A stretch of 63,998 bases of DNA, filler included, from Lenisia limosa (taxonomy: Eukaryota > Protista > Breviatea): assembly GCA_001655205.1 (NCBI GenBank). It is 7 parts of 7 records of this genome, joined end to end, with 100 filler letters (N's around TTAATTAATTAA, not from the genome) between each part and the next. Parts side by side here need not be neighbours in the genome. Positions count along the whole stretch, not along the records: positions 1 to 23,896 come from LPNZ01007120.1; 6 more parts are not named here. One strand, given 5' to 3'. Both the position numbers and the translations under genes were made by a program. The notes below the pieces were generated by a model. It had not been told where the DNA came from. It did no database searches and saw only the letters and a program-made list of their open reading frames with translations. This document shows positions 1,524 through 20,896 of this stretch, piece by piece (position 1 is the first letter of the stretch; the number at the start of each line of letters is the position of its first letter).

Positions 1524-3311
1524 ATGGTAGATTTTGACAAGGATGACCTTCATCCTGATAATTGGAACTATGGAGCAGTTTGTTTGGCCCTTTCAGGCTT
1601 TTACGGAATTTTGGTGTTGATCAGTTTTGTTCAACTGGTTCGAGTTAAAATCATTCTTCCCAAGTCTAAATGGGACAGTCAAAAGCTTTTTTGGTTTCTG
1701 ACGGCCCTCTCAAGTACCTGTATGTCTTGCAATAGGTCCCACTCTTTTACTTTTGTAGTGAGATTGGCTTTCTTTATTTATGTCTACAACTATGAAGCAG
1801 AAGACAGCTATTTCATACCATCATTATCTTCAACGTTATTTACGGTCTTTGATGATCTACCTGCGTTAATTTTCTTCACGACATATACCCAGCTGCTTGT
1901 TTTCTGGTAAGAATGGAAATCTTCTCATGCTTGGATATCTTGAAGACTGAATAGGGAGTGTGCTTTATTGACCTCCCTCAGAGTATTATCTGATATATGA
2001 AGCTTATATTATACGTTAATGTTGATAATATGACCCCTCAGGGCGAGTATTATTGCCAACGCTCGCTCAGGATACGAGGTGTATAGCCGGAGACTCAGAC
2101 CTTTATCTGTTATCATTAACTTGTTCGTCTACATCTCCCAAAGTTTGTTGAGGGATTTTTTTTATTATTGTTTTAATAAGAACCATATTGACTATTTAGC
2201 TATCTTGTGGGGAATGTACTACTTTGCCCCCATTCCTAACGACATAATTGAGCGGATTCTGAACCTGTTCTTTGCCGGGGTGTCTCTGTTGGCTGCCTTA
2301 GGTTTCATCGTTGTCGGCCTTACACTGTTTGTTCTGCTCATTAGGTATGGTTAGGCTTAAATTAAGAAGGCTCTTAAATCTTATTAATATGATTTGTGGA
2401 ATGCTTCTGCTAGGCCGGCTCATTTCTTCAGATATAGAATATGATTTGTAATATTTAAACTGCACTAATCTGACCTTCTTGTATGCACTAAAAACCAATA
2501 AGTTCTCTTTAGAGTGAAGCCCCAGGATCCAATATTAGCCAAGTCCCGACGATATAAGCTTATTGAGGTGCGTGAAGGTCCAACATTAGCTAACTTGGTA
2601 AAACGTTTCATTACGATTTCAGGTTGCATTAGTTACATTAGTTTGTTTCTCTGCATTTCTTGCGAGATCGGTTCTTGTTGTTTATAGTCAGGTGAGTGGT
2701 GATAATATTATTTCCATCTTACCCATGAGATTTTGACCAGTCAACGTGACGCATTTTTATGAAGTACTAACCACTCTTTTAGTTTAAAGAAAACTTGGTG
2801 ACAGAGCCTTGGTCAGTATTTGCCTACTTTTTCTGTGCTGAACTGATACCGTCGCTACTGGTCCTCTTTGTCCTTCGCAAAGTGAGTTTTTGGGCCTCTT
2901 TGGTCCTTGGAAAATGGAAAATATCAACATTTTCAATCACCGAGCCTTTGCTGACTGTGCAGTTGCCCCGGAAGAAGTCCGATCAGACCACGCTTGTGAG
3001 CCACCGGCGAAACGGCCGCGGAAGTGCGTCACGCCACACACCCCGACAGGCACGCCAACCTTACGCTGTCCCGGCTGCTAGGTTGGTGAGGCCCTTTGAT
3101 TTGAGCGGCATACATACCATGCCATATATAAACGGGGTGTCTGGAGGTAAGTTAAATGTAAACTTCTGCAAGGAACCGAAATGCGGCGGGAGGGGGTCCG
3201 CTTCTTGTTAGCCCTAACCGAAACAGGGCCTCTACACCACCGAGCCATAGTCACAGAGGATCGCCATACAGTGTTGGTCGGCCTCCCACTCCCTACGATC
3301 AAAGAGTCTAA
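1524..3311 (+). CDS. THH1/TOM1/TOM3 (tobamovirus multiplication 1-like, DUF1084) multi-pass membrane protein
   Basis: Hydrophobic exons include LISFVQLVRV..KWDSQKLFWFL, DDLPALIFFTTYTQLLVFW and FFCAELIPSLLVLFVLRKLP, which are typical of this family. There is a Ser/Pro/Arg-rich tail, and the spliced frame ends at TAA 3309-3311. Confidence 0.8.
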
Positions 3312-3537: not shown

Positions 3538-5344
3538 TTACACAAGAAGAACTAAAAAGTGAAACCTCAGCAAAGTAGGAGTCGAAACAGACTAAAAAGA
3601 GGCAGCAACCTACCAGCATTGATGCATCCGTCGTTCTCGGGATGGTTAGTGACCTGGGCGTACTTGCCCCAGACGACCTTGCCGCCAGTTGTCACCAAGC
3701 CCAAATCTGACACGTTGACCTCAATGACCTAATGTGTGAGAAATGCTCAGTTGAATAGATCCACTGTTTTTGTTTGAATCGTGAAGAGCATTTAAAAGAA
3801 AAACAGTCCAGTTAAAAAAGAATAAACCAGGTGGCCACAAACTCGTAAAATTAGCAGCTAATACCGCCAAACAATAAGTCAGCCGTTTAAAGTCCATCCC
3901 TCCAACAGTTCCCTTGGTGATAACGCCGAGAGTGGTGTAGAGTGGAGATGAGGGGTTCTTCTTAACGCCGATGATGTCGAGGTTGAAGGTAGCCTTGAGC
4001 TCAGGGTGGGTAACGTGAGCCTGGGGGGGGGGGGGGNNNNNNNNNNNNNNNNNNNNNNNNNNNNNNNNNNNNNNNNNNNNNNNNNNNNNNNNNNNNNNNN
4101 NNNNNNNNNNNNNNNNNNNNNNNNNNNNNNNNNNNNNNNNNNNNNNNNATTTATGAAACACAAAAAAAAAACTCAATGTCAGGGCAACTTTCTTCGATGA
4201 AGCGTCCATTCATATTAAGAAGAATTGATGAGAGGCCCAAACCACAAACCTTCTTGAAACGAAGTCCGGTGGGACGAATGAAGCGCTCGTACTTGGGTGG
4301 TTTACGGGTGAAACCGTCTCCAACGAATGTCACCTTTGTGATCATTCTCTTCCATGCCTTAGCTACAAGCATTACAGACATTCAAGTGATCAAACACAAA
4401 CAGAACCTAAAGACCACCTCTCACCCTTTCTCTTTCCAGTCTTCACCACCTTGAACATTTCATCATCAGCAATCGGGCGAACCTAAAGAAAATGAACAGG
4501 GACGTCGAGGGCTTATTACACTAGGAATCTCTGAAGGCAGACCCCCTCACTTTAGGAATGGGGACATCCCATTTTCCAGCCTTCTCCTTACGCTTTTGTT
4601 TGATAGTGTTGTTCAAAACCTTGGAGGTGAGTCATGAAACTTGCTAGGAAAGCGGAGATTAGACTTGTCCTACCTTGGCTCTTGACATGCCCTCACGGTC
4701 CATAAGATAGGCGGGCACAGCACCCTCGGGCTTTGTGTCCTTCTCCTTCACCTTACGCTGCTTCTCATCATGCATGGCAATTCTAATTCGTAACACCTCC
4801 TGCCAAACCCATACCAATATCGATATTGAGCATCAGACTAGTCATTGTAGTACATGCGACTTAATACCACCAATTACAATCACCCCATGCCTCTCCCTTA
4901 TCCCTCTACTGTTTCCAAAAAGAATACCATGTCTGAGAAGAGACAAAATGATCAGATGACTGACTGCACAAAAGAGAAGCATGCAACCTACGTTTTCTTC
5001 ATGGCGGCCTTCTCCTTGTAACGTTGCTTGTTAAACATCTTTGCCTTGAGCCCATGGAGCTAAATGGTAAGCGAGGCTTCGAAGAGGCTTGACTCGGGAG
5101 AATTTGAAACTTTTACAAACCTTCTTGGCCATCTTTGAGTTCTTCTTAACATCTCTAGCCTCCTTCTTTCTCCTGAAAAGGTAAATATCCGCATAGTCAT
5201 TGTTAGAAACGCCAGAAGTTACAAAATTACTCACTTTTTCTCTTCATAATCAAGCCTTCTTCCATTACGCTTTTGGAAAAGCTCAATATGCTCGTGTTGC
5301 GGCTAGAAAGTTAATGGGAAAAGAGGGGGAAGGAAGCAAACCAT
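3538..5344 (-). CDS. NSA2: Ribosome biogenesis protein NSA2
   Basis: ATG|intron|[22 protein letters not shown]; [29 protein letters not shown]; [38 protein letters not shown]; [41 protein letters not shown]. Confidence 0.96.
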
Positions 5345-5609: not shown

Positions 5610-7710
5610 ATGGTTCGCAGAAGGTCCAAGAAATCCAAGTCCAGTGCTGCTTCAGGCAACGCTGAAGTACCATCACTTGAGCAGATGAATAATGAACTCG
5701 AGAGTGGAAGAGGCGTCTTTGAAGATGACTCTGCACAAGGACAGATGTGAGTTCATCTTGACCAATATTATTACCATCTTTAACATCGTTTAACTTCAAC
5801 CCAAGATCAAGCAATGTTATCTTGTTGTATATTTTTGAGTTTTTCAAAAGCTTTTTCTATCTATTTTTCTTGATATAACCCTTCAGTCCGTTCTCCGACC
5901 CCAACATGGTGACGTTTGCAGCACCCACCCCCATGACCTGCGGATGGGTCAAGTGCGACAAAACAGTACGTCTCGGCCTTGAACTGATGAATTGACTTCT
6001 TCAGGAGGACGCTTCAGCCCCCTTCAAGGAGTGTTTCTCATGCGGCACCAAGTATTGCTCCGAGGAATGCCAGGTCCGTCTTTTCTCCCTTCTTTACTTC
6101 GCGCGTCAGTTTTCCCAATCTTACAGGAGAAATGAAATTGTGGTGTCATTCAATTTAGGACCTGGATTGGCGGACCCACCACAAAGCTGCAGGTTGTGTC
6201 CAGCATTCTTACCTTTTCAAAACTACCAAGAAGGTGAGCGTTGGTTCGCAAATTGGGGTCACAGCACATTTTTTCGACCGGTAATGTAAACTCACTTGTT
6301 TTCTATGACCGGTAATTTCACAAACATGGAATGAACCGAAACCGAGCGTGTCCATCAGTGTGATTTATAAATAGTCAAAGGTGGCGTTTTTGTGTGACAG
6401 TTTTCGGGATTGTAACCTGGCTTTAACCATCATCAACAACAGTGGTTATGAACAAAAAATATACCACCAGACCAGATACCATAGGGAACTGCTTCGTTAC
6501 CCCGTATTCCACCTTACTCCCTCTGACACATTCAGGAAGAATTCCCCACCCAAATGGTGAACCCCTACAGCTGCCTCAGTAAGGCCATCAGACGTGTCAG
6601 ATTTCATTGTTTGCGGGCTGGAATTGAAGTGTCTAGGATGGGGGGGGGGGTNNNNNNNNNNNNNNNNNNNNNNNNNNNNNNNNNNNNNNNNNNNNNNNNN
6701 NNNNNNNNNNNNNNNNNNNNNNATTGTTTAGTATGTCCATTTGTTGTGGCGAACTACGACAAAGTCGGGCGTGGAGTTGTCTTCATGCGCACTAATGAGC
6801 CAATCAAAGTACGTGTTTTTCTATTATCAAGCAAACTATTAGGCTATTTATTTAAACTTTTATAACGACGATAGTATGGAATACAACCTTTCTCATTCCA
6901 CCTTTTTTACCCCTAGTCCTATTACTTCGATGCGCCAGTTGACTGTTACGGTCGCGCAATGAAAAGAGAGGTTGGAGGCTGGGCTCAATTGTCAATCCTT
7001 TCTGTCACAAGGCCTTCAAGCCTTCGTCGTTGTTTTCATGGTTTAGGTGGAATCCATGTACATCCCTGCCGATGTTTTTGAGAAGGATTTCTCAGCGATG
7101 CAAGGCCTCCCAATGTACAGCCAGGCCCTGGTTGGCACTGTCTCTTTTTGTTTATTGAACATCGTATTTATCAAATTGCTAACCACGAAAGTAAGCCAAA
7201 TAACACCATAGGAACAAGTCAAGGTTTACGACCCAAAGGAGTCGTTTGTGCTAGTCATGATTGCTCGTTGCGGCTGGGCTGTTGTTAGCAGTATCAAACT
7301 CACTCCTGAGTACCCTGTTTGTCAGGTGGGTGGAATACTGTTGAGCTGTCCGTTTTTGTCACCTTTTCGCAATTGGATGATCCTTTAGAATTTGGTACAA
7401 ACCGGCTCGGATGTGGGGCCCGAGATCCTTTTGATCATTGATGACCATGAGCATGCCACTGGAGAAGAGGATTCACACAAAGAAGGCAAGCCGATGCTTG
7501 TAGCTGCAGGCCAGGGCGCAAACGCTGAGGTATGAACTGGGTCACCTCTATCATACTTCATACTTATCATACACAAAGGAAATATTATTTTACACATGCT
7601 ATGTGGTAACATTCTAGGAGTTGAAAGCCGCTTTTGAGGCAATGAAACTCAGTCAAAAGAAGAAGGCAGAGGAAAAGAAGAAGCAAGAAGAGGCTGAGAA
7701 ATCTTCATAA
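5610..7710 (+). CDS. MYND-type zinc finger protein
   Basis: Spliced exons give MVRRRSKKSKSS..., then CGWVKCDK/EDASAPFKECFSCGTKYCSEECQ/DLDWRTHHKAAGC (MYND Cys/His pattern), and end ...KKKQEEAEKSS* at TAA 7708-7710. Confidence 0.7.
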
Positions 7711-7845: not shown

Positions 7846-10800
7846 TTACAATCTTGATGCTAATTCCGAGTTGACATTCGACATAACTTTCATGAGTTGG
7901 CCTAGAAGGGTAAATTATATGTCTCTGTGGTTTATGATGAACTCAGAAGTCTATTCCATGATTCAAATAAAGAAAAAATATACTACTATCTTGTCTTCAC
8001 CTTGTAAATGGGCAAGGGATTTGGCATCCATGTCTTTGAAATTCATTTCAAGCAATGAATCTATTTTGGCATTATTAGAGCGCTGTTGGGGCGGGCTTGG
8101 GGCCTTGAAACCTTCTAAGGGATAAGAACGAGTTCCTTCAAGTAACAATTTGCACTATGGTAGTACAATGGGTAGAATAAGTTGCCTCACGAAAAGACCA
8201 TGCCCACTGATTGCAGGCCTTCCTTCAGGGGTGACCTTCGAATCCTTTGATGGTGACGTGTCAAAAGGTAACGTGCGGCGAGTCGGCTTCTAAGGAGGGG
8301 TCAAACTTTTGATGACACCAGGTTTTGAAACAATACAGATTAATCAGAAATCTGAGGAGGAAAGGAGATAGCCACCCACGTTTTGAGGAGAGACGTTGCC
8401 ATTTTTCCTTGCAATATCCCCCATCTTCTTCACAATGTTGTTCATCTGGTCATTGGGGATCTTAAGCGCTTTCAGCTCATTAAGCGGAAGGGATGCCAAC
8501 TGCCCAACGGTTTTCACCGACTTAGTGCTCAGCGCCTGGGGGATAGTCAATGAATACAATATGATATCATATCATTGATGTAGTTTATCAGACAACAAAA
8601 CTAACGCCACCCCTTATTAAAGATTGTGACTAAAACGAATACTAAATAGACATGCAATCACCTACCTGGAGAATACTCCTATTGAACACTGACGACATTG
8701 CTGAGAGGAGAATGCTGTTACCTGCTAGTTCGGGGAAGCACGGTCCGGATGATGACGGTGGCGATGGTGATGACTTTACTGTGCGTCGGCGATTGGGCTG
8801 AATCATGAAGGGTTGATAACAACAAAACAAAGCCAGTCGCTTCTGCACCGCAACACCGCATCCCATCACGGGGGGGGGGGAGTAAAACGAAGGAAATTTA
8901 GATGAAGAATATTGGTGTAGAGGTACTAATCACGAAGTGAATAATCTGAAACTCCAAACAAACAAAAAACAAAAATCAAGCAATAACAAACACGAGCAAC
9001 CAACGCTTAAACTAAACAAAAACCAGATGACAAAAACACAAAAACAAAAACAAGCCCGCATTAAAAAAGTGAGGGAAATGTTTTAAAAAAGCCGGAGCAG
9101 TCAGATTTTCCAAAAAATCAAGCAAAAAAAAAGTCAACCATGAAAGAAAGGACCAAACCGGGGTGGAAGTAGCAAGGAGGCTTGGGAGGGATGGAGCTAT
9201 TTTGGGGTTCATTGTGTTTCGTTTTCTATGTGAGTTAAGCAAGACACTCCCCTCAACCCCATGATGTATATATCAGGCAGAACTCTCATACCCGGGTAAG
9301 ACTCTCTCGTATGATTGTGGTGGTACATAGGGAGGCACAGGGGAACCAGGGGGTAACGTGCTACGGCCAGGAGAGCTGAGGGGTGAGAGGGATGAAGGGG
9401 ATTGGGATGTTGTAAAGCAATGTAATGTGATTGTGAACAAATGAAGTTGCTTACCATGGAATAACAGGGATTGGTACAGACTGAAAAGGTTAATTCAAAT
9501 AGAAAACAGCAGAGGTTTGGTGTTGTATTAAAATACAAACCAAGAAGCCTACCCCAACGAAGTCTATGGAATCGATCTGAGCAGCTGTTCGTAAGGCTGA
9601 ATGCAATGGCAAATTGGGACTCTGCCTGTTCTGCGTATCTAGTAGCTGCGAGAAATGAGAGTTGACTGTAACCATGGCTTTCTACAGCCAATGTCTTCAA
9701 AATACACAGATGATATACAATAGGTAATTGCAGCAGGAACTTACATTTTCTTTTGAGTTAAACACTACGGCTTTACTTGGTTGCGGGGACTCAACTGCCA
9801 TTTTTGAAACTTTGGGGGTAATTAGTTATATGTTCTTGTGCATCATTCCAATCCGATCGTTCATTTTCATAAAATGCTCTGGAGCGGATAGGATCGGTTG
9901 GGAACGATATATCGTTTTAGAGCTCTGGGCAATAAATATTAATATTATTAATATGATATAGTATACTATATGATAGATCAAATATATATTATGATATATT
10001 AATGATATCAAAATATAAATATAATGTTTCTTGAAGCAAAAAAAAGTCATATTAACAATATTAATACATATCAATAAATGATCAATATATGTATACTATA
10101 TCATATATCATATACTACAAAATAATATATATATTAATTACAATATTAATACATATCAATAAATAATTAGAATAAAAGGAGTATTAAGAAAAAAAATACC
10201 GAAGGAACTGTAGAAACAGAAAAAACAGAAAACGGAAGAACAAAAAAATCAACGAAATGAAATACATTTTTTAAAAATTGTTCTTATACAATCAGGGAAC
10301 AAAAAACAATTAAAATAATTAAAATCAAAAACATACTACTAATATATTATTCTTATCATTTGAATAGTAATATATATTAATACAATATTAATACTGATAT
10401 TAATACATATGATCATATTAATATTTAAGATGAACAAAACAATACATATTAATTAATATTAATATTACTATTGCCCGGAGCTCTCATATTTTTCATTAGA
10501 AAATATACTTTTCAATGTATAACTTGTTTTCATAAAACATCTCTGTCGTAATCAATCATTTTAATAACTATCCTGCCAATTTTGAATGACAAAATATGTA
10601 TATATATAGTATATAAAAAAGGAAATCCCCACCACAATCCGGATTGGTTGAAAATATATGTTCTGTATAGGATCGGTTCGCGGTGATACACAAAATGTTG
10701 CAGTAGAAATAATCAATTCAATTAAAAGTTAATCCCCACAAACTAGGCTCAGGAGTTGAGGGTGCTACTGCTACTTCATTGCCGGTTTTTTCAGCAGACG

Positions 10801-13800
10801 TAACCTCTTCCTTTTTTTCTTCTTCCTCTTTTACGTATTCCACCTCCTCTTTGTTGTCAACCGCTTTCTTCATTTCTTCCTTCAATTCTTCCTTTTCTTC
10901 TTTTTCTTCCTTCTTGCTATTTTGTTCGACTTCCCTGTCGTCTTCCTCTTCAGCTGTCTCCTCGTCCACCACAGTGCTCACAACTGAGTTGGTTGTACCA
11001 GCTGCTTCCGATAATAGACTGGAAGAAGGGACCAGGGACTTGTCAGATGTACTGCTGCCGGGTTTTTCGAGGGCTGTTGAAGCTTCTGTGTCGTCTTCAG
11101 CCTCCATTACATTGGGGGAGTTTTCATTAGGGGCTGAAGCTTCAGGAAACTCAATGTCAGATTCGTCGTCCGAAGGTACCGCAGAGGTAGCTTCGGTTCC
11201 ACCTTCCTTATTTGGTAAGGATTCCTTCTGTGGTGTTGTGGACGGACAGGGTAAATCACGGGCGGAATCGAATTGATCCGCTAAAGACCTCTTTGTGGGC
11301 TTACTGGGAGATCAATCAAAAAGTGCGAATATGAAAGCAAATATGCCGTATCTCACAGTATTAGCAAATGAAGGAGATAGATAAGGCAAACCCGTTGAAT
11401 AAAGCAAGGACGTCTTGAAGGTCGGATTGAGATCTGCTAAAGTCCATCGTTTGTGTGTGCTCAAGGCCTAGAGAATTAGAACTCCTGTTGCTTCGGGACC
11501 TCACCCCTACCGTTATACATGGCGGGAAGGGCTTGACGCTCTTCCTTGCTTTCGAGCTGATGAACCGTGAAAATACCGCCTTTGACTGCAGGAGATGTGA
11601 CGGATACGAACATGTCGTCTTCATTCTTCATTGCCAGACCTAAACTGTTAACCAATCCGATCCTAAGATCTGCCCACCAGGCGACACAAAAGCTGTCTTT
11701 TGCGCAGTATGAGGAGTCTTCTGCTCCTGTGGAATTTTCGGGACTTTACTGCGTGGTGAAGCGACAAGGGGCGCATCTCTTGCACGTTTGAGAGGAGTGG
11801 AGCTGATGATCTAGGGCATTAGTTAATGTCAAGGAGAACAGTAAACATACTGAGGATGATGAGGAAGATTGCTTCGAAGCGGGAACTGTAGAAGATTGGT
11901 GGACGGAAGTTGAGGATGAATGTTTTGACAGAAGTGGTTCTTCTTTTAGCCAGCCTAAGGAGGTGAGTAAGGCAGTTCTGGCTCACCACTCCAAAGTTCG
12001 TACTGTATTTATGAAATACTATAACTCGATAACAGTACAGGTCTACTTAACCATAAACATAAAAATGAACAACCTATCATATGGGTGATTATTACAAGGA
12101 AAGCAAACCAGGGAGATTCAGGAGATGACTGGCTTCGTAGTTACGCACGGCTGCCTTGAATTCCTCAGAGTAGGCAAGCTCAACGGCAGCACTTAAAGGT
12201 TAAGTGAAGGAGCACGATGATAAGTAGTAGTGTCACAGGCTACTCGCTTACAGAGCAAAAGACCCATTCCAAGCATTGACAGCGGCTTCCTTTACGTCCC
12301 CCTGTTAGGTTATATTAAATCAACTCGCAACTGATTTGGTGAAATGGGTGGAACAGTTTATATTTAAATAACGACAACATTTGCGTCCTGAAGCAACAAA
12401 AGCCCCCAACCGAAGGAGAGCTGAGAGCAAGGCAGAATAGAGCCTCATAAGCAGGGTAGTAACGATTTATTTGCATCGGCGACACCGAGAATATCACTTC
12501 ACTCCATGTTATCAATAGTTTACCTGAAACATGACACCCTCCATCAACGCTCCCTTTTGTCAAAGAAGACCCACCAGCAATAGGGCCGAAAGTCGGCACC
12601 AAAGCAAGGTCCGGTTCGGATGCAACGGAACCGGTTGATGTCAGCGGTCGCAGGAGACACCCAAAGAGACTGCTGGTGTGCTGGAGAGAGTTGGCTCCTT
12701 CCTCACCTAGGTGGAATGGCATAAGGAAGGAGCAACTGAAAAATACATTGTCCATGATTTTCTAGTCATACGTTTTATAACCTCAAAAGAGTCCCCACAC
12801 ACCAGCCATAGAATCGTACAACGCGGTCAGACCTTCGCCCGCTATCGCTACCACTCCCAAGAGTTCTGTTGTACTCACAGTCGTCATCTGGGGGGGGGGG
12901 GNNNNNNNNNNNNNNNNNNNNNNNNNNNNNNNNNNNNNNNNNNNNNNNNNNNNNNNNNNNNNNNNNNNNNNNNNNNNNNNNNNNNNNNNNNNNNNNNNNN
13001 NNNNNNNNNNNNNNNNNNNNNNNNNNNNNNNNNNNNNNNNACAATTGAATGGAAAACAGTCTCACCTCTCTGAGGGATTCATCTGTTTTATTGAGTGCAT
13101 AGTGGAGGGAACTGAGCACTTTTGGAGGATTCCATTTGTCTGAGACACTTCCCAAATACTGCAGTGTCAACAGAGAATTCATTGAAATAGCACAAGGCTC
13201 ACATAGGAGCGCCCTTTGCCGAGGTTTGAAGTGGTTACACAGGCCGTGATGAGTGAAGTTCTCAACTTTAGTGCGGCCAGGGTCTTCACTTTGGCCTAAA
13301 AAGGTAAACCAGTGGGAAGCACAGAGGCAATAGTCCCCCTCGCACGTGTCCCAAAGCCCTTGCAGTGGCACTGGTAACCGCGTTGACATCAGGGTAGACC
13401 AAATCTGTGACAGCAGATACAGAAGAGACAAGGGCTTTCCATTCTTTGACCAAGTCCTGAACGTGAGAACACTAACAATAATAATATGATATAGAAATGA
13501 GTGTAACTTGACAAAGAGTCAATTTGCCCCTCCCCCCTGACAGAATTTTCAAAGGCTTCTGGTGAGTGGTTGGAGAGCTAAATGATGATATTTCACGGAT
13601 CAAGAAAAACATCAAGAAAAAAGATGGGTTGAAGGTGATAAATACATTTCATGGAGAAATGGAAAATAATCCTGCTTTCCAATTTTTCACCAAAAGACCC
13701 AAATTCCCTCCCAATCTTTTCAGATAATTAATAACGCGCAGGACTCACCAAAACAGGTGCAACAAGGAATGTGACGAATGGCTTCAAGTCGTGGTTCTTG

Positions 13801-16800
13801 ACGGTAATCTACTTATCGTACAAGAATATCACATACCATTCCAAAAACGGCTGATTTTGTCCGCATTACTTTCGCTGAAACGATAAACGAAAGAGCAGAG
13901 TTGACAAAAAGAAGTGCATATTATCAGGTACGCTAATATAGCAACCTTACGATATGGTCAACAAGATCGAAGCCCTCAACCCACTCGCAACCGCCTTAGC
14001 AGCAATGCCCCAAAGAGAGGCCACGAAGCATGCCAACTTCTCACTTCGGTCATCGTAGATTTCAGAGAGAGTTGTCACCATGTCAACAATCTTGGAAATA
14101 AGGAGAAGTCAAAAGAAACAAACCTGGATTGCCTCCCATCCTGACATGGCTTTGGACCAACTTGCCAGAATACTGTCAATGACATGAGCATTGTAGTTTT
14201 GCTGGATGATGACGTGGAGAGAAGCGGATGCGGCAGCGGACGGGACAACTCCTTGTTCACAGAACGACCCAATGAGACTGTGGTGTCACGTTGCAAATGG
14301 TTGGAACAGGAATTATTGTTGAAAAAAGACGGATGCCCACTCTTTCTGGTTAAGTTCACTGAAATCCACCGGGGCACTAGCTGGTTGTCTCATGAGTTTT
14401 GAGGGGATGGAGTTGAGGATGATAGAGAGCATTGCAGCCGGATGTTCTGGCATAGGATGGCGAGTGGACCTGTGTGTCAATCTCATGAGAAATATATCAC
14501 ATAGAGATGAGTAATAAAACAAGGTTGTATCTGGCAACATAAACATATTAGAGGAACAGTGAAATAGTGAAAATTTAGGCTGTCCATTTGCAAAACTGTA
14601 CGATTAAATAAGAAGCTAAGTCTAATGTTGCCGCAAAAGGATACAGCATAGAGTACCGCAAACTTAGAGAACACGACCCAGAGTTTGAGGGATTCGGAGA
14701 ACAGAGTTTTGGAGGCGGAATGTGGTGAAGACTCAGAGGAATAGATAGTCGTCGCCTTAATAAATGAAAAGAGTGATGAAAAGGAGTGCCTTGGTACATT
14801 TCTTGATAAATGTTAAGGAGACTGTTAAGGTCAGGCTCTGGAAGAAGAGACGAATAAAACACACCTTGGCAACCAGACTACTGAGCATTCGGAGGCGGGC
14901 GCTCTGCATGGGTCAAAATCAAGAGCAATTCGTAGAAGTGAAAAAAGGTAATCTGTGTGAGCTCTTAGTATTCCAAAGAAAATGCAACTTTGCAACCCAC
15001 CAAGTGGACCATAATGTTTGTCTCCGGCATTTCTTTGTGCAATGTCGTCAACCACGCCGTGATCTGAAGAATTAACAAAAAAGCGAAACCGAGCGTAACC
15101 TGTGGGATTTGTCTTTAGTGTAAAACTAAAAAAGCAATTATTTTGATGTTAGAGGGCAATGTCGTTAACCGCAGCAAACCTGATGGATTTTGTTTTTCAC
15201 CCAGACAGCTGGGGCCTTGGATGGCGGTGGCACCGCAGGCATTCTCCTTGGTCGTATGGCTTGTCCAGACAGCATCGAACTATTGGTATCAGCATCACCA
15301 AACTAGCAGTGTTTCCATCAGAAGAGTAGCTTACTTTTGAGGATTATCGACAAGTGGGGGTGCAAGGACCCACGCCAACACCTCGGTAATGCATGATCTG
15401 AAAAGTTATCCAAAGGTTACCGCAACAGAAAATAATATAAATAACGTCAGTTCGCACCTGGTGTCGTCATCTAGTCCGGGGCTGGCCATTAAGGACTCAA
15501 GAGCATCAACGATAACGACGTTGAAAACGAAAACCTGCTCATTGTTGGCGTTGAACTGGAGTATTAATCAGAAGACAAATACAGACTATGTAGAGGTGAT
15601 ATGTATTTTGGTTAGGAGAAAGGATCCCTAAAAACAAAGTCTCACCTCAGTTGGCAGAAGATGAAGGGTTTTCTCCACCAAATGTGCCCAACAGATGGCA
15701 GCATTGTGAATAACACTTGGCTCGGTTTCGTTTTGAACTCTGAAAATGTCAACCCTGGACAGCACAGATCTTGTACTACGAGTTGAACCATTCCAACCTG
15801 TTCAGCGGCTTGAGCAATAGTTTCAACCTTCGGTAAGATGTTAATCCTAAGGAGTCATTCATAAGAAAAACTACCTCACTTCGGTTTCCCAAAATGACTG
15901 AATGTCTCAAAAAACAATCCATAGCAAGGATTTTTCGGACTTGAATCGCCTACCATTTGGCTGACAAGAGAAGGCGAAAACCAAAGACTGCCACGCCACC
16001 ATTGCCTCAGCTCTCACGCGAACATCTGGTGAAACGAAAAAAGACTATTGGTAAGAAAAGGTCTCAGTAGCATAGAAGTTCTTTGAATATGGTGATCCCC
16101 ATTCTCAATTAGCACATGTAGCGTTGTATATTTCAAGTCACTTCACCCACTCTTTGAACAGAGAGCATTTGGTTGAGCGTGTTACGGGAGAGATTCTCGT
16201 TGGCTGAAATCAAGATGAGGTAGCCCCACACGCGGGCTGCCACAAAGGCTGAAACATTAGCGTAAATATCACAATCAATCCAATGGATATGAAACGCTGC
16301 AGCGCCAAAACTCCGAATTTTTTGAATAAACCCCGAATTTTTTGTTCCCAACAACACACAAATAGGTTCATACTTCATGAAAACAAAAAAAAACGTTCAT
16401 AAAACATAAAATAGAAGAAGATAGAATACTGTTTTTTTCACCAAAGAGAAAAACTAGATCATTTTTTTTTGCTGATCTTGCCTTGATCTGTCAAAAAAAT
16501 ATTTTTCTTTTCTCTCGTTTCCGCGCATTTTATTTACATTTTTGAAATATATTTTCATTTTCTACTAGAAAGGTACAAGAGGTCGCTTTTAAAGATGACT
16601 TTTTTTTGGAGTTTTTATTACTTTGAGTGTTTATACACCTCCCAAAATGCAATTTGTTTTTGAAATTTTCTTCTTCCTTTCACCAAAAGAAGTGAATGAT
16701 TATGATATGGCAAGAAGAAGGATGGACGAGGTTGTGAAGTGGAGAGGAGAAGAAGAGCTAAGAATAAGGACTAAAGGATGGTTTAAAGATAAGGAGAGAA

Positions 16801-19800
16801 GAAAGGAAGCAAGAAAGATGTATGCAAAGTGGAGGAAGAAAAGACAGAATGAAGAAGTATGGAAAAGAAGGCAGGAGAAGAAGAGAGAGTATAAAGAAGA
16901 AGGAGATTTTTTTCTACTACTGTGGTGATGGAAACGACTATCGGAAGAGGAGGAGGAGGAGGAGGAAAGAAAAAGCAGCAAGCGCAAAGCTCATGAGGCA
17001 ATGAAGCGTCTTGATGTTTTTTTGTATTGTAGTTTTATATAACCCCAAAGAGGGTTTGTGTGTGGTTTCTTTGAGACTCCCCTTACATCCCCTTATGCAA
17101 ATCGGAGACTTCTGTTTCCTGGGTTGTATACACCCCCAGATTATTGATGCATTAAAGTTCAAGTTCAAAGTTCAAAGACGTTTGAAGATATAATATACGA
17201 AATAGTTATAGATATCATATACTATATATAAATCAGGAAAAGTTAAAGAAAAGGTGAAACCGTTGAGTCGTTTGGGAAGCTCAATTTTTCTCACCCTGTA
17301 AGTTGGACTGCAGTTTGTTTTCCACTCCGCTCACTGTCTAATATTGAGCATTGCTATTATAAGAAGCTCTGTATGAGAGGAAAACACCTACTGACGCTCC
17401 CTTATCAGATTCATCTATTAACAGTCAACTTTTTATTTGACCTTGTTCAGTTGCACCATGGGGAGGAATAAAGCAGTTTTGTACTTTGAGGAGAAGCTTC
17501 AAGGAATGGAGGTAAGGGATATTTGGGGAGCAAAGCCAAATATCCTGACAAACATGGAGAAAGATCGTATTCTCAAGGAGATTGCTGAGTTGATTGTTAA
17601 CCTGCCACCTGATTCAATCTATGATCAGGCTTCGTTCTGCTTGTACCCGATGGCAAGTGACACGCAATTAAAGTTCCCAAAAGCCAAATTTATGAACCAT
17701 TTAAGAGTTTGATGAAGAAGCAGGTTGATCCAAGTAACACAGACCATACGAAGTTCCATGGGAAATTAATTGGAAGACCAGACCACCTGTGTCGAAACAC
17801 GCGATCAATGCTGGTAGCAAGGCGATTCGAAGACTCCAGTCTGTATGTTGGGGGAATAGAATACGTATTTATACTCAATATTTGCTCCTAATTTTGCTCA
17901 TTTTGCCTACGCTTACTGTTTAGATGGGAGTAAAAGTTGATTCAAGAAAGGTGGCAAAGAAGATTAAGCAAAAAGATCCCAAAGGAAGAGGTTCTGTAAA
18001 CATTGCAAGGAACTGATGAAAGACCTCGCTCCTCCTTCAGAGCTTGATATCAACCGCCAAAGAGCTACCCAGGTAGAATGAGAATTGTCAAAATAATGCC
18101 TTCAACGATTATACTTGTGACTTGTTCACCTCATTCAGCCTGAAAATGTTCTGATAATGGCGCGGTTATGGAATGCTAGTCAGCGTATTTGGTCACACTG
18201 CAAGAGTGTAGCTGCCTCATCTCAGACCAAAAACCCAGATACCCTCAACAAACCTGGGAGTACAGGCCTACCATGCTGCTTTGACTATTGAACTTCTGGT
18301 TGCCGATGCTTGGAAAAAAGTTCTCCTCTGAAAAAGCATGCGAAACGGTTAGTTTCTTCTTTCACAGTTTTGATTATGTCAATAAATACGATAAAAAGCT
18401 CTCATCCCGGGGGGTGTCATATGCTGTTGAGGTAGACATCACTGAATATTCTAAAAAAGTGGTGTTGCTTTTGTTTGATGCATTTTTACATTTTAAAAAA
18501 TCAGAGCCTCAAGTCGTGACCTATCCCATCATTAAGCACACTGGTTGATATTCTTGATACCGCCACCCCAGATTACCAGTGCCCGAACTCTCATTTGAGT
18601 TTGAGCAAGCAGTTGCACAGCAAGCATCAAGAGCAGTGCGTGATTTCATCAAGGAGGAGGAGTTTGAGGTATCATCAGATTCTGTAGCATATGCCGAAGG
18701 TATTGCCGCAGCTCTTGCAGCGATTGTCCACCTCCACCCTGAAGTCGCCAGCGACATGTCGAAACTTGTCTACACTGTAGCCACTGCAAAAAGCCTTTCT
18801 CTTGCACCCTTTATTTGCAAGGGTGTTAACTTTTCTATTAACATTGGAGCGATTGTTGAGGATGTCAAGAAGCCGCTTTCTTGTGTATCTTTGGCGCCAA
18901 CTGACCGACTGGTGACCCTTGAGCCTGGACAGGTATGATGACCATGCTGGGTTGTATATTCAAATGGTGGTCGAGTTATAATCGTGAGTAGCATATTTAT
19001 ATCACCAGTCCATGAGATTACTGAATTTGTTGTAAAGACGTGTGACTTTATCCTCAATAGATTATTGCCCACCCTGACGATCTCAAGCCGAATATTGTAC
19101 GGCAGATGAAACTGTCCATGTCAAATGGGGATATAATTTGCACTGAGACTTGCTGTCGCGCTGGAGGCTTACCCAAGCTGAAGGATAACAGCCTGCGAAA
19201 GCAGAAGGCTGCTAAGGAGAGAGTTTAGAGTCTGTTTAGAGTAGGTTTGTGAGTTATGTATGAATATAATGGCCATTTTTCTTGGCAACTCTGTTTTTTT
19301 TGGAAATAAAAAAGTCATTATACACTGGGTGTTTGCAATTCGATGATATAATAAAGTTTTCCTTGAGTATTAATTAAAGCAGTTACTTAAGACAAATTTG
19401 TGTAAGAAAATAAAATTCGGAGTTTATTCAAAAAATTCCGAGTTTTGGCGCTGCAGCATATATGATCATAACAAAACTAGCTAGTAGATGCTTGCTGTTT
19501 TTATTTTAACCAAGCTTACGGTTTGAGGCTTTTAGCTCATTGAGCCTTGTGATCCAATCCTTGTCTTGAAGCCCCTCCAGTGTTATCTGTCAGTTGTGAA
19601 AAAGTGAAGCAAACTGCTCTTTAATAATTTGTTGTGATCTTGTTTTGGTATTGCTTTGTACTAGATTGATATCAAACACAAACCTGCGCAGTTTGAGGTG
19701 GCACAATGGACGACATTGACATAACTTTCCGCACAACAGCATCGGCAGTTTCTTGAATCCTAGTGGGTCAAAGGACACGTGTTTATCCATATTTCAAGGT

Positions 19801-20896
19801 TGATCCCCTTACATTTCTTTTTTTGAGAAGAGAAGATCGACAACCGAGGGTAGCCAAACATCGACATTGGCAGTAATGAGTGTTTCGGATTGGTCAAGGA
19901 AACAGGAACAGGCCTGAGCGAGGATTGGGGTGAATATCATAGATGATATATGTACACTGACCGCGATAAGGGAAAACAAAAAAAAAAGCCACAAGAACCA
20001 ATTTTTTAATTTAGCAGACTGATAATCGACCTGCCAACTCTGAGCCCCTCAAGCGTGAGAGCTACGGACATAAACGGGTTATCCAGTGCGGTCTTGAGCG
20101 TCTCAGCCACTTGGCGTGAAGTGGCATCGCTGTTGTCAGCAATCTTCTGGACTGATAGTACCCAGGCGGCGTAGGTGCATACCGACTACGTTGTTAGGGA
20201 ACATGCTATTCCTTTCATCCAATGGTTCGAACTAGGAACATGCAGCAAATGCAGTATTTATTCGTGAAAACTTATTGTGTGTTATAAAACTAGGATCGAA
20301 GAGAGGCTGAATTAGCTATTCAATTGAAAAGTGCGCGCCAAAAACAATTACATAAAAATGGGCTTGTACTGCTTTTCAATACATGGGCTCTATATCTTTG
20401 AGTATTCATTCATTTATCTTAGAACATCACTTTAAAACCGTTATGATANNNNNNNNNNNNNNNNNNNNNNNNNNNNNNNNNNNNNNNNNNNNNNNNNNNN
20501 NNNNNNNNNNNNNNNNNNNNNNNNNNNNNNNNNNNNNNNNNNNNNNNNNNNNNNNNNNNNNNNNNNNNNNNNNACAGTTTTCTTAACCGTCGCGTTAAGA
20601 CTATTCACAATAGGTGTACTGTATAAGGCAATTCCAAGGAGGTTGAGGGCAAAAGAGGCTCTACAAGAGGTAAGAAGATTAAGGCGCCCAAACAGATTCG
20701 CATTTTTCTGACTCGTGACATCTGTGATGAGCAATGTGGACAGCTCTTCTGACTTTTTTACAAAAATGGGATTAAATGAAAGCTCATCCTCCTTTGCATG
20801 AGTGATAAGAGACTCAAACAGCTTTTGCCGTGTAAAGCTATCTGTTTTCTTATCTAACACCAGCTCAATTAGTTCATCGCATGTACGATGAGCCAT
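7846..20896 (-). CDS. RIF1: Telomere-associated / replication-timing protein RIF1
   Basis: N-terminal HEAT region: FALNLLGIALYSTPIVNSL, AAWVLSVQKI, VWGYLILISANENLSRNTLNQML, VRAEAMVAWQSLVFAF. Mid motif: HQLESKEERQALPAMYN (recalled animal HQKEV..IPAMYN). C-terminal region: PCFPELAG..ALSTKSVKTVGQLASLPLNELKALKIP and DAKSLAHLQGQLMKVMSNVNSELASRL*. Confidence 0.88.
9918..10485. mobile_element. Non-autonomous TIR element (hAT-like termini) in a RIF1 intron
   Basis: Left end TAGAGCTCTGGGCAATAAATATTAATATT is the inverted repeat of right end AATATTAATATTACTATTGCCCGGAGCTCTC. The interior is AT-rich with a repeated AATATTAATACATATCAATAAAT unit. No clean TSD was found. Confidence 0.65.
16707..19228 (+). 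pseudogene. Degenerate intron-containing orphan gene inside the TIR element (antisense to RIF1)
   Basis: Coding-like segments include a basic/acidic N-terminus MARRRMDEVVKW..., AVLYFEEKLQGMEVRDIWG..., PELSFEFEQAVAQQASRAVRDFIKEEEF...LVTLEPGQ and IIAHPDDLKPNIVRQMKLSMSNGDIICTETCCRAGG...KERV*. Frameshifts occur near 16920, 17700 and 18550, and there is an in-frame TGA near 18328. Confidence 0.55.
17038..17172 (-). repeat. Dispersed repeat R3, copy 1 (inside the nested element)
   Basis: The reverse complement reads GAACTT..AATGCATCAATAATCTGGGGGT..AAACAGAA..CCGATTTG..TTGGGGTTATA, matching 36569-36700. Confidence 0.75.

Follow-up and report, generated by a model that had tools for sequence, protein, structure and literature searches.

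In Tc1-type elements with inverted-repeat/direct-repeat (IR/DR) ends, each end carries two direct repeats that are transposase-binding sites. piggyBac and Kolobok elements target TTAA. hAT, CACTA, PIF/Harbinger and Mutator elements follow the conventions YARNG, CACTA, GGSC... and long GAGAAA-type arms, with target-site duplications (TSDs) of 8, 3, 3 and 9-11 bp, respectively. Here a 63,998-nucleotide stretch of the Lenisia limosa genome (GCA_001655205.1; seven parts joined end to end with filler, hereafter the window) was analysed. In its 23.9-kb LPNZ01007120.1 piece (window positions 1-23,896), a gene-carrying insert bounded by terminal inverted repeats (TIRs) lies in an intron of a RIF1-like gene. 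The insert is probably an old copy, now inactive, of a class II-type TIR element with few genomic copies, and it entered the intron in antisense orientation at an AT-rich ATAT site.

The family represented by this copy is like the Tc1/mariner IR/DR elements (Tc3, Sleeping Beauty) in its two direct repeats per arm, in insertion next to a TA within AT-rich sequence of ATAT type, in its size of 2-3 kb and in its internal-deletion derivatives. It is unlike them in that a DDE/DDD domain (DDE_1, DDE_3, Transposase_1) was not detected (best DDE_3 E=0.18), its termini start with GCT rather than CAGT or TACAGT, its arms measure just 52-63 nt, and its gene has several introns. A TA duplication is compatible with the flanks if the termini are read as TGCT...AGCA, TA being indistinguishable from ATAT. 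ATAT as one reading of the flanks recalls the 4-bp TSDs of Sola, piggyBac, Kolobok and Ginger1, but Sola transposases are much larger DDD proteins, and none of five ends carries the TTAA of piggyBac and Kolobok (ATAT at four, GAAAC at one). Termini, flanking direct repeats and Pfam domains do not match hAT, CACTA, PIF/Harbinger or Mutator. The occurrence of full-length copies with a short derivative (a contig connecting 16489 to 19228) is like the autonomous/MITE-like (miniature inverted-repeat transposable element) pair Ping and mPing, whereas the copies number in the single or low double digits against hundreds, and the superfamily-defining features are missing. By the tests used, no known superfamily could be assigned to it. 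An earlier reading of the DNA alone (the sequence-only reading) had put the termini outside the CAG/TAG, CAGT, CACTA and GGGC conventions, and the GCT starts agree with it; neither TTAA nor direct repeats of 8, 3 or 9-11 bp flank the element.

The element and its place in the RIF1-like gene

The element, its arms, its flanks and the host features were located as follows (window coordinates).
16296-19457, plus strand: whole element, TIR-bounded, 3,162 bp; its gene is on the plus strand, antisense to the host RIF1-like gene
16296-16347, plus strand: left terminal inverted repeat, 52 nt, 92% complementary to the right arm
19406-19457, minus strand: right terminal inverted repeat, 52 nt, pairs with the left arm
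16308-16324 and 16328-16344 (16308-16344), plus strand: two direct sub-repeats AAACYCCGAATTTTTTG of the left arm, candidate protein-binding sites
19409-19425 and 19429-19445 (19409-19445), minus strand: two direct sub-repeats AAACYCCGAATTTTTTG of the right arm
16287-16295, no strand: left flank, ATAT at 16287-16290 then GAAAC at 16291-16295; the expected ATAT is displaced or mutated
19458-19461, no strand: ATAT abutting the right end, candidate TSD (ATAT or its central TA)
16249-19519, minus strand: host RIF1-like intron, 3,271 nt, GTAAGC...TTTCAG, houses the element
19520-19586, minus strand: host exon upstream of the large intron, frame continuous; RNA depth 2.26 in bin 19575-19749
16151-16248, minus strand: host exon downstream of the large intron, in frame with 19520-19586; an RNA contig over 16151-16237 is spliced to four downstream exons
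15955-16044, minus strand: host exon with Rif1_N match, 30 aa, Pfam E=2.5e-4, 20.6 bits (single-exon query; whole-protein cut-off 23 bits)

The two arms mismatch at four of 52 positions, and a repeat search gave 3,058 nt of spacing between them. Weak AT-rich pairs aside, they form the sole long inverted repeat of the 23.9-kb piece. A 36-nt terminal pattern, allowing up to one mismatch, matched the two arms alone and had no match in 100 shuffles. The sub-repeat AAACYCCGAATTTTTTG is 17 nt long, with copies 20 nt apart in each arm; all four of its matches in the window fall within the arms (expected 0.02). The TIRs of about 47 bp described in the sequence-only reading were thus real, their length slightly understated. 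When the window, L003 and L002 types (the latter two on paralogous contigs described below) were compared, the termini began with GCTGCAGC, GCTAGGCA or GCTGCTCC.

The host gene is supported as RIF1-like by the Rif1_N match, the open frame and HEAT/importin-like Atlas features on its N-terminal (first large) exon. Exon 15955-16044 aligned to positions 284-310 of 374 of Rif1_N (PF12231), and no other Pfam family matched, in line with the identity first proposed. In polyA RNA (run X2), five downstream minus-strand introns (15398-15457, 15556-15645, 15740-15797, 15847-15953 and 16045-16150) and one upstream (19760-19812) were spliced; all six are GT..AG introns of 53-107 nt. Seven host exons, spliced, gave one open frame of 190 codons that reads ...ELKASNPFVAARVWGY... 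over the 19520/16248 join, so the in-phase join over a 3,271-nt GT-AG intron that had been predicted is borne out by the frame. PolyA RNA depth was about 2-4 and similar on either side of the large intron, and zero in the intron's non-element flanks. Among the run X2 polyA contigs none joined 16248 to 19520, and we infer this splice from the open frame and the GT..AG ends; RNA splicing, proposed earlier as a check, was accordingly seen in the exons on both sides and not across the long intron itself.

The large intron is about 30 times the length of its neighbours. Taking out 16296-19457 leaves 47 + 62 = 109 nt, which compares with the 53-107 nt of the RNA-supported introns and bears out the residual length given before. 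As in other intronic antisense insertions, the host exons are expressed similarly on both sides and the residual intron is of normal size; nothing about this was unusual. As an insertion it is ordinary, and this defective copy probably does the host no harm.

Copies, paralogues and target site

Copy number was read from Logan contigs of run X1, using 31-mers and a host-flank depth of about 43. The left host-flank contig ends at 16325, 30 nt (k-1) inside the left arm, as expected if the sequence from 16296 inward occurs elsewhere with another flank. The right host-flank contig opens at 19409, the first 31-mer to hold the right arm's private mismatch at 19439. Bins of the element interior had depths of 80-900. 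Less than 99% identity to the window was found in 43 of 81 contigs, so paralogous fragments exist. Contig branching exactly at the arm boundaries and the extra depth over arms and interior indicate multiple copies with common termini; the flanks of the window-type copies are not readable. One contig, with SNPs (single-nucleotide polymorphisms) and indels of its own, connects 16489 to 19228 via 24 filler nt, and another of like depth has lost 38 nt near 19285-19324. Taken as a pair, the two contigs resemble a short internal-deletion derivative in which both sub-terminal regions are retained.

The 119-aa open reading frame (ORF) at 18579-18935 was searched against 1.84 billion protein cluster representatives. 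Four family members were found, all on contigs of ENA assembly ERZ3820729: one, P0001, is the window's own ORF, and three are paralogues. The long matches P0004-P0006 of the same search were rejected as low-complexity proteins. Contig L004 from ERZ3820729 matches the window at 100% identity along 5,143 + 1,593 nt, and a separate dispersed repeat is common to L002, L003 and the window; L001-L003 are therefore paralogues in one genome and not from a second organism. The sequence-only reading had proposed a TBLASTN of the internal protein across the genome; this cluster search yielded three relatives, and L003 has both arms.

The L003 arms (2299-2361 and 4617-4679) are 63 nt long and 92% complementary, and they lie around a homologous gene. 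Like the window arms, they start with GCT and carry two sub-repeats, spaced 20 nt, whose core is AACTCCG. Gene orientation is shared by both elements, and the distance from stop codon to right arm is 170 nt in L003 and 178 nt in the window. L002 carries a third type of right end. L001, with an intact 235-codon exon, has a coverage of 482 against 32-43 for other contigs (about 12-fold), which suggests about 12 near-identical copies. This contig is 770 nt long and consists of that one intact exon with about 50 nt and 16 nt of flanking intron; either the copies begin to differ in the introns, or the exon has been homogenised. The family comprises two or three diverged subfamilies in one genome and was apparently amplified recently (collapsed contigs of about 6x and 12x).

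The alternative that nothing here is mobile, and that an ordinary host gene is nested in a long RIF1 intron between a chance pair of inverted short repeats, would fit the lack of an exact TSD and of an observed empty allele. It is very improbable, since contigs branch at the very termini of the arms, the deletion derivative connects both sub-terminal regions, L003 is an independent element of the same design, and the 109-nt residual intron is close to the host range. The insert is mobile DNA and not a chance bracket, as these branch points, the multi-copy interior, the derivative and L003 indicate; on this the sequence-only reading, which had weighed a mobile element against a bracket of solo repeats, chose rightly.

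An assembly artefact, in which a 3.2-kb chimeric repeat join was misplaced between the RIF1 exons, was also weighed. In its favour, the piece comes from a draft scaffold in which N gaps occur, and contigs break at the interior repeats. Against this, two assemblies, that of the window and ERZ3820729 (NODE_156), show no base difference along 5,143 nt covering the whole element, Logan contigs span both host/element junctions (15200-16325 and 19409-20440), and single-copy interior contigs are at flank depth, although the same reads may underlie all three observations. An artefact is hardly credible.

An ATAT/GCT junction was found at four of the five ends (window right, both of L003, L002 right). 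The exception is the left flank of the window copy, where GAAAC abuts the arm and ATAT lies 5 nt further out, by either two substitutions or 5 nt of filler. The L003 element occupies the only ATAT in a dispersed repeat with the consensus ...GAAGAATATTGG.... ATAT being palindromic, a 4-bp duplication (ATAT), a 2-bp duplication (TA) or no duplication all fit. The target is likely to be ATAT or TA, judging from these junctions, and the element-free RIF1 intron would read ...AATGGATAT joined directly to ATGATC....

The element gene and its protein

The following segments of the element interior were recognised in the window copy.
16688-17162, plus strand: purine-rich segment with a Lys/Arg/Glu-rich charged ORF (ATG 16707, stop 16926-16928); DNA depth 146-400
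17458-17842, plus strand: upstream coding remnant of the element gene, decayed, frames switch 0/2/1
17924-18072, plus strand: broken exon, 1-nt deletion after 18010 in the window copy
18139-18347, plus strand: another stretch of decayed coding sequence; frame switches, TGA in frame at 18282
18579-18932, plus strand: conserved exon, helical part of the C-terminal module
19061-19228, plus strand: last exon, TAG at 19226-19228, acceptor at 19060, basic C-terminal tail

Over 17912-18095, a contig of depth 281 (about 6 copies, 96% identical) carries one additional A after 18010. With this base, exon 17924-18072 is a single open frame of 50 codons, whereas the window copy meets stop codons. The window copy switches frame repeatedly over 17458-18347 and has in-frame TGAs at 18282, 18546 and 18555. 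No intact spliced ORF could be modelled for it: the frames do not join, which fits a pseudogene. Because of the lost base after 18010, the frame switches, the in-frame TGAs and the 92% arms, the window copy is, as its reading frames indicate, an old, dead, frameshifted member of a family with intact and apparently recently amplified members. The multi-exon gene that the sequence-only reading had placed on the strand opposite to RIF1 is there, on the plus strand, and is broken in this copy. The standard code fits the host exons and the element genes. In P0001, the public gene call over the element (L004 3001-3831), TGA is translated as Trp (…HTGWYSWYRH…), which means that the L004 contig was called with a non-standard code.

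Exon 18579-18932 is 44% identical to P0002, 36% to P0007 (multiple alignment; 39% in the search) and 40% to P0003; against L001, L002 and L003 the values were 44%, 39% and 32%. The last exon (19061-19225) is 52% identical to L003 and 47% to L002 by BLASTP, and 48% and 39% in the multiple alignment. Significant similarity of the window to L001, L002 and L003 is confined to the last ~170 residues; upstream gene parts show weak and uncertain resemblance. For this C-terminal module, L001 and L003 differ with dN 0.13 and dS 1.3 (nonsynonymous and synonymous divergence; dN/dS 0.10), and by this ratio the ~170-residue module is under purifying selection. Selection has preserved the module and its divergence has kept pace with that of the arms, so transposition probably requires it, either as a transposase or as a cofactor that binds the terminal repeats.

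Segment 16688-17162 occurs in a few further genomic copies. It is about 96% identical to an abundant polyA RNA contig, whose depth of 56 is about ten times that of the host RIF1 contigs (depth 6) and whose upstream 319 nt are unlike the window. Its ATG at 16707 lies about 360 nt from the left arm, compared with about 340 nt in L003. The segment may be the element's 5' exon or untranslated region, or a captured or nested repeat.

Domain searches used exon-sized pieces, so a divergent catalytic fold may remain in the spliced protein; on this scale, a spliced 69-aa L003 peptide over the putative second and third acidic residues gave zero Pfam matches. A pogo/DDE_1-like motif (VLDGARVH ... PAFTSHFMQVGD) suspected in L003 was dropped, since this peptide gave no match and the window subfamily lacks the motif. 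PDB sequence searches with the family protein found nothing, and Atlas feature searches of the element protein gave no lead. Word-based searches with P0002, L003 exon 1 and P0001 returned the queries themselves only. Metagenome scans with a protein pattern and the exact arm sequence found nothing, as did a viral scan; Rfam and tRNA scans returned nothing for the piece, and a literature search by motif gave no matching paper. Among the 1.84 billion representatives the conserved gene was found in ERZ3820729 alone, always between arms where both flanks are visible. The protein appears to be an orphan, with no relative detected outside this assembly.

Several results weigh against reading the insert as a dead copy of a TIR transposon. 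Pfam searches of all internal ORFs and paralogue exons recognised no domain; the best lead, that to DDE_3, scored 12 bits against a cut-off of 28.6 and was limited to L003 2885-3127. The putative D..H motif of L003 is not kept in the window subfamily, and the family alignment of the conserved module holds no invariant acidic triad. The N-terminal halves of window-type and L003-type genes share no significant similarity. An AlphaFold2 (AF2) model of P0002 (main exon), from a six-row alignment, reached a predicted local distance difference test (pLDDT) score of 50, too poor for a fold search. The window copy has no clean TSD (GAAAC on the left, ATAT on the right), as the sequence-only reading had also observed, and no empty site or excision footprint was seen in the run X1 contigs and one assembly. 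All copies come from one assembly, of which X1 is possibly the source sample.

Some of these points would fit a non-autonomous cargo carrier, in which the arms are mobilised in trans by an unseen transposase and the gene is captured or hitch-hiking, as in Pack-type elements: the conserved module lacks a catalytic domain and invariant acidic residues, the N-terminal parts differ between subfamilies, and segment 16688-17162, shared with a separately transcribed locus that has other upstream sequence, could be a captured fragment. Both complete elements, however, have the same gene orientation and the same distance to the right arm, the divergence of the arms parallels that of the protein, purifying selection between subfamilies is strong, and no arm-free copy that could be a host parent was found among the cluster representatives. 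A cargo carrier is therefore unlikely. The sequence-only reading had left the choice between an unclassified DNA transposon and a cargo-carrying element; the family is indeed unclassified, and its gene looks like its own, co-evolving with the arms, and does not look like an obvious captured host gene.

If the insert is a dead TIR transposon, a protein would bind both 17-nt sub-repeats of each arm, an arrangement like that of Tc1-type IR/DR elements, and the element would then be excised and pasted into TA or ATAT targets. Intact relatives in the same genome carry their own intron-containing gene. The window copy would now be a passive passenger, removed with the intron, with the RIF1 exons on both sides still expressed.

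Neighbouring features and significance

Other features of the window were recorded in passing. One is a dispersed repeat family, about 250 nt in length, whose copies share 72-89% identity; it has a run of 11-13 G followed by GTAAAACGAAGGAAATTT. Its copies lie at window 8793-9052, at L003 1-83, 1938-2061, 2181-2291, 5575-5751 and 6601-6871, and at L002 1303-1497; the L003 element is inserted in one of them. The window N run 20449-20573 corresponds to L004 5144-5238, 95 nt of real sequence with a long poly-C tract, and the N runs 883-952, 4037-4148, 6652-6722 and 12902-13040 are likewise flanked by poly-G/C. The N gaps probably mark homopolymer tracts, which possibly belong to the G-run repeat family. 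Window 9935-10430 is a very AT-rich island, the GC content being 18% in 10001-10500; it holds several direct repeats of 40 nt (TATTAACAATATTAATACATATCAATAAATGATCAATATA) along with weak inverted repeats. A three-exon gene lies at window 1524-3211 on the plus strand, its ORFs matching Pfam THH1/TOM1/TOM3 collinearly (E=1.7e-14, 9.9e-8 and 4.5e-3).

For annotation, the element accounts for an overlong intron in an essential replication-timing and telomere gene, and the plus-strand 'gene' at this locus is a dead transposon gene rather than a host gene. For transposon biology, the locus adds an unclassified inverted-repeat family with a selected protein that has no detectable relatives. It is conceivable, though quite doubtful, that the family is autonomous and that its intron-containing orphan protein of about 300-480 residues is a eukaryotic transposase of a new kind, or else a terminal-repeat-binding protein indispensable to one, with no relation to the DDE/DDD, tyrosine-recombinase and HUH enzymes catalogued to date. 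In that case the family would found a superfamily of its own, with inverted repeats, GCT termini and ATAT or TA targets. Should the protein turn out to mobilise the element, it would represent a new type of transposase; otherwise the locus would give a clear example of an accessory gene that is specific to the element and co-evolves with the terminal repeats.

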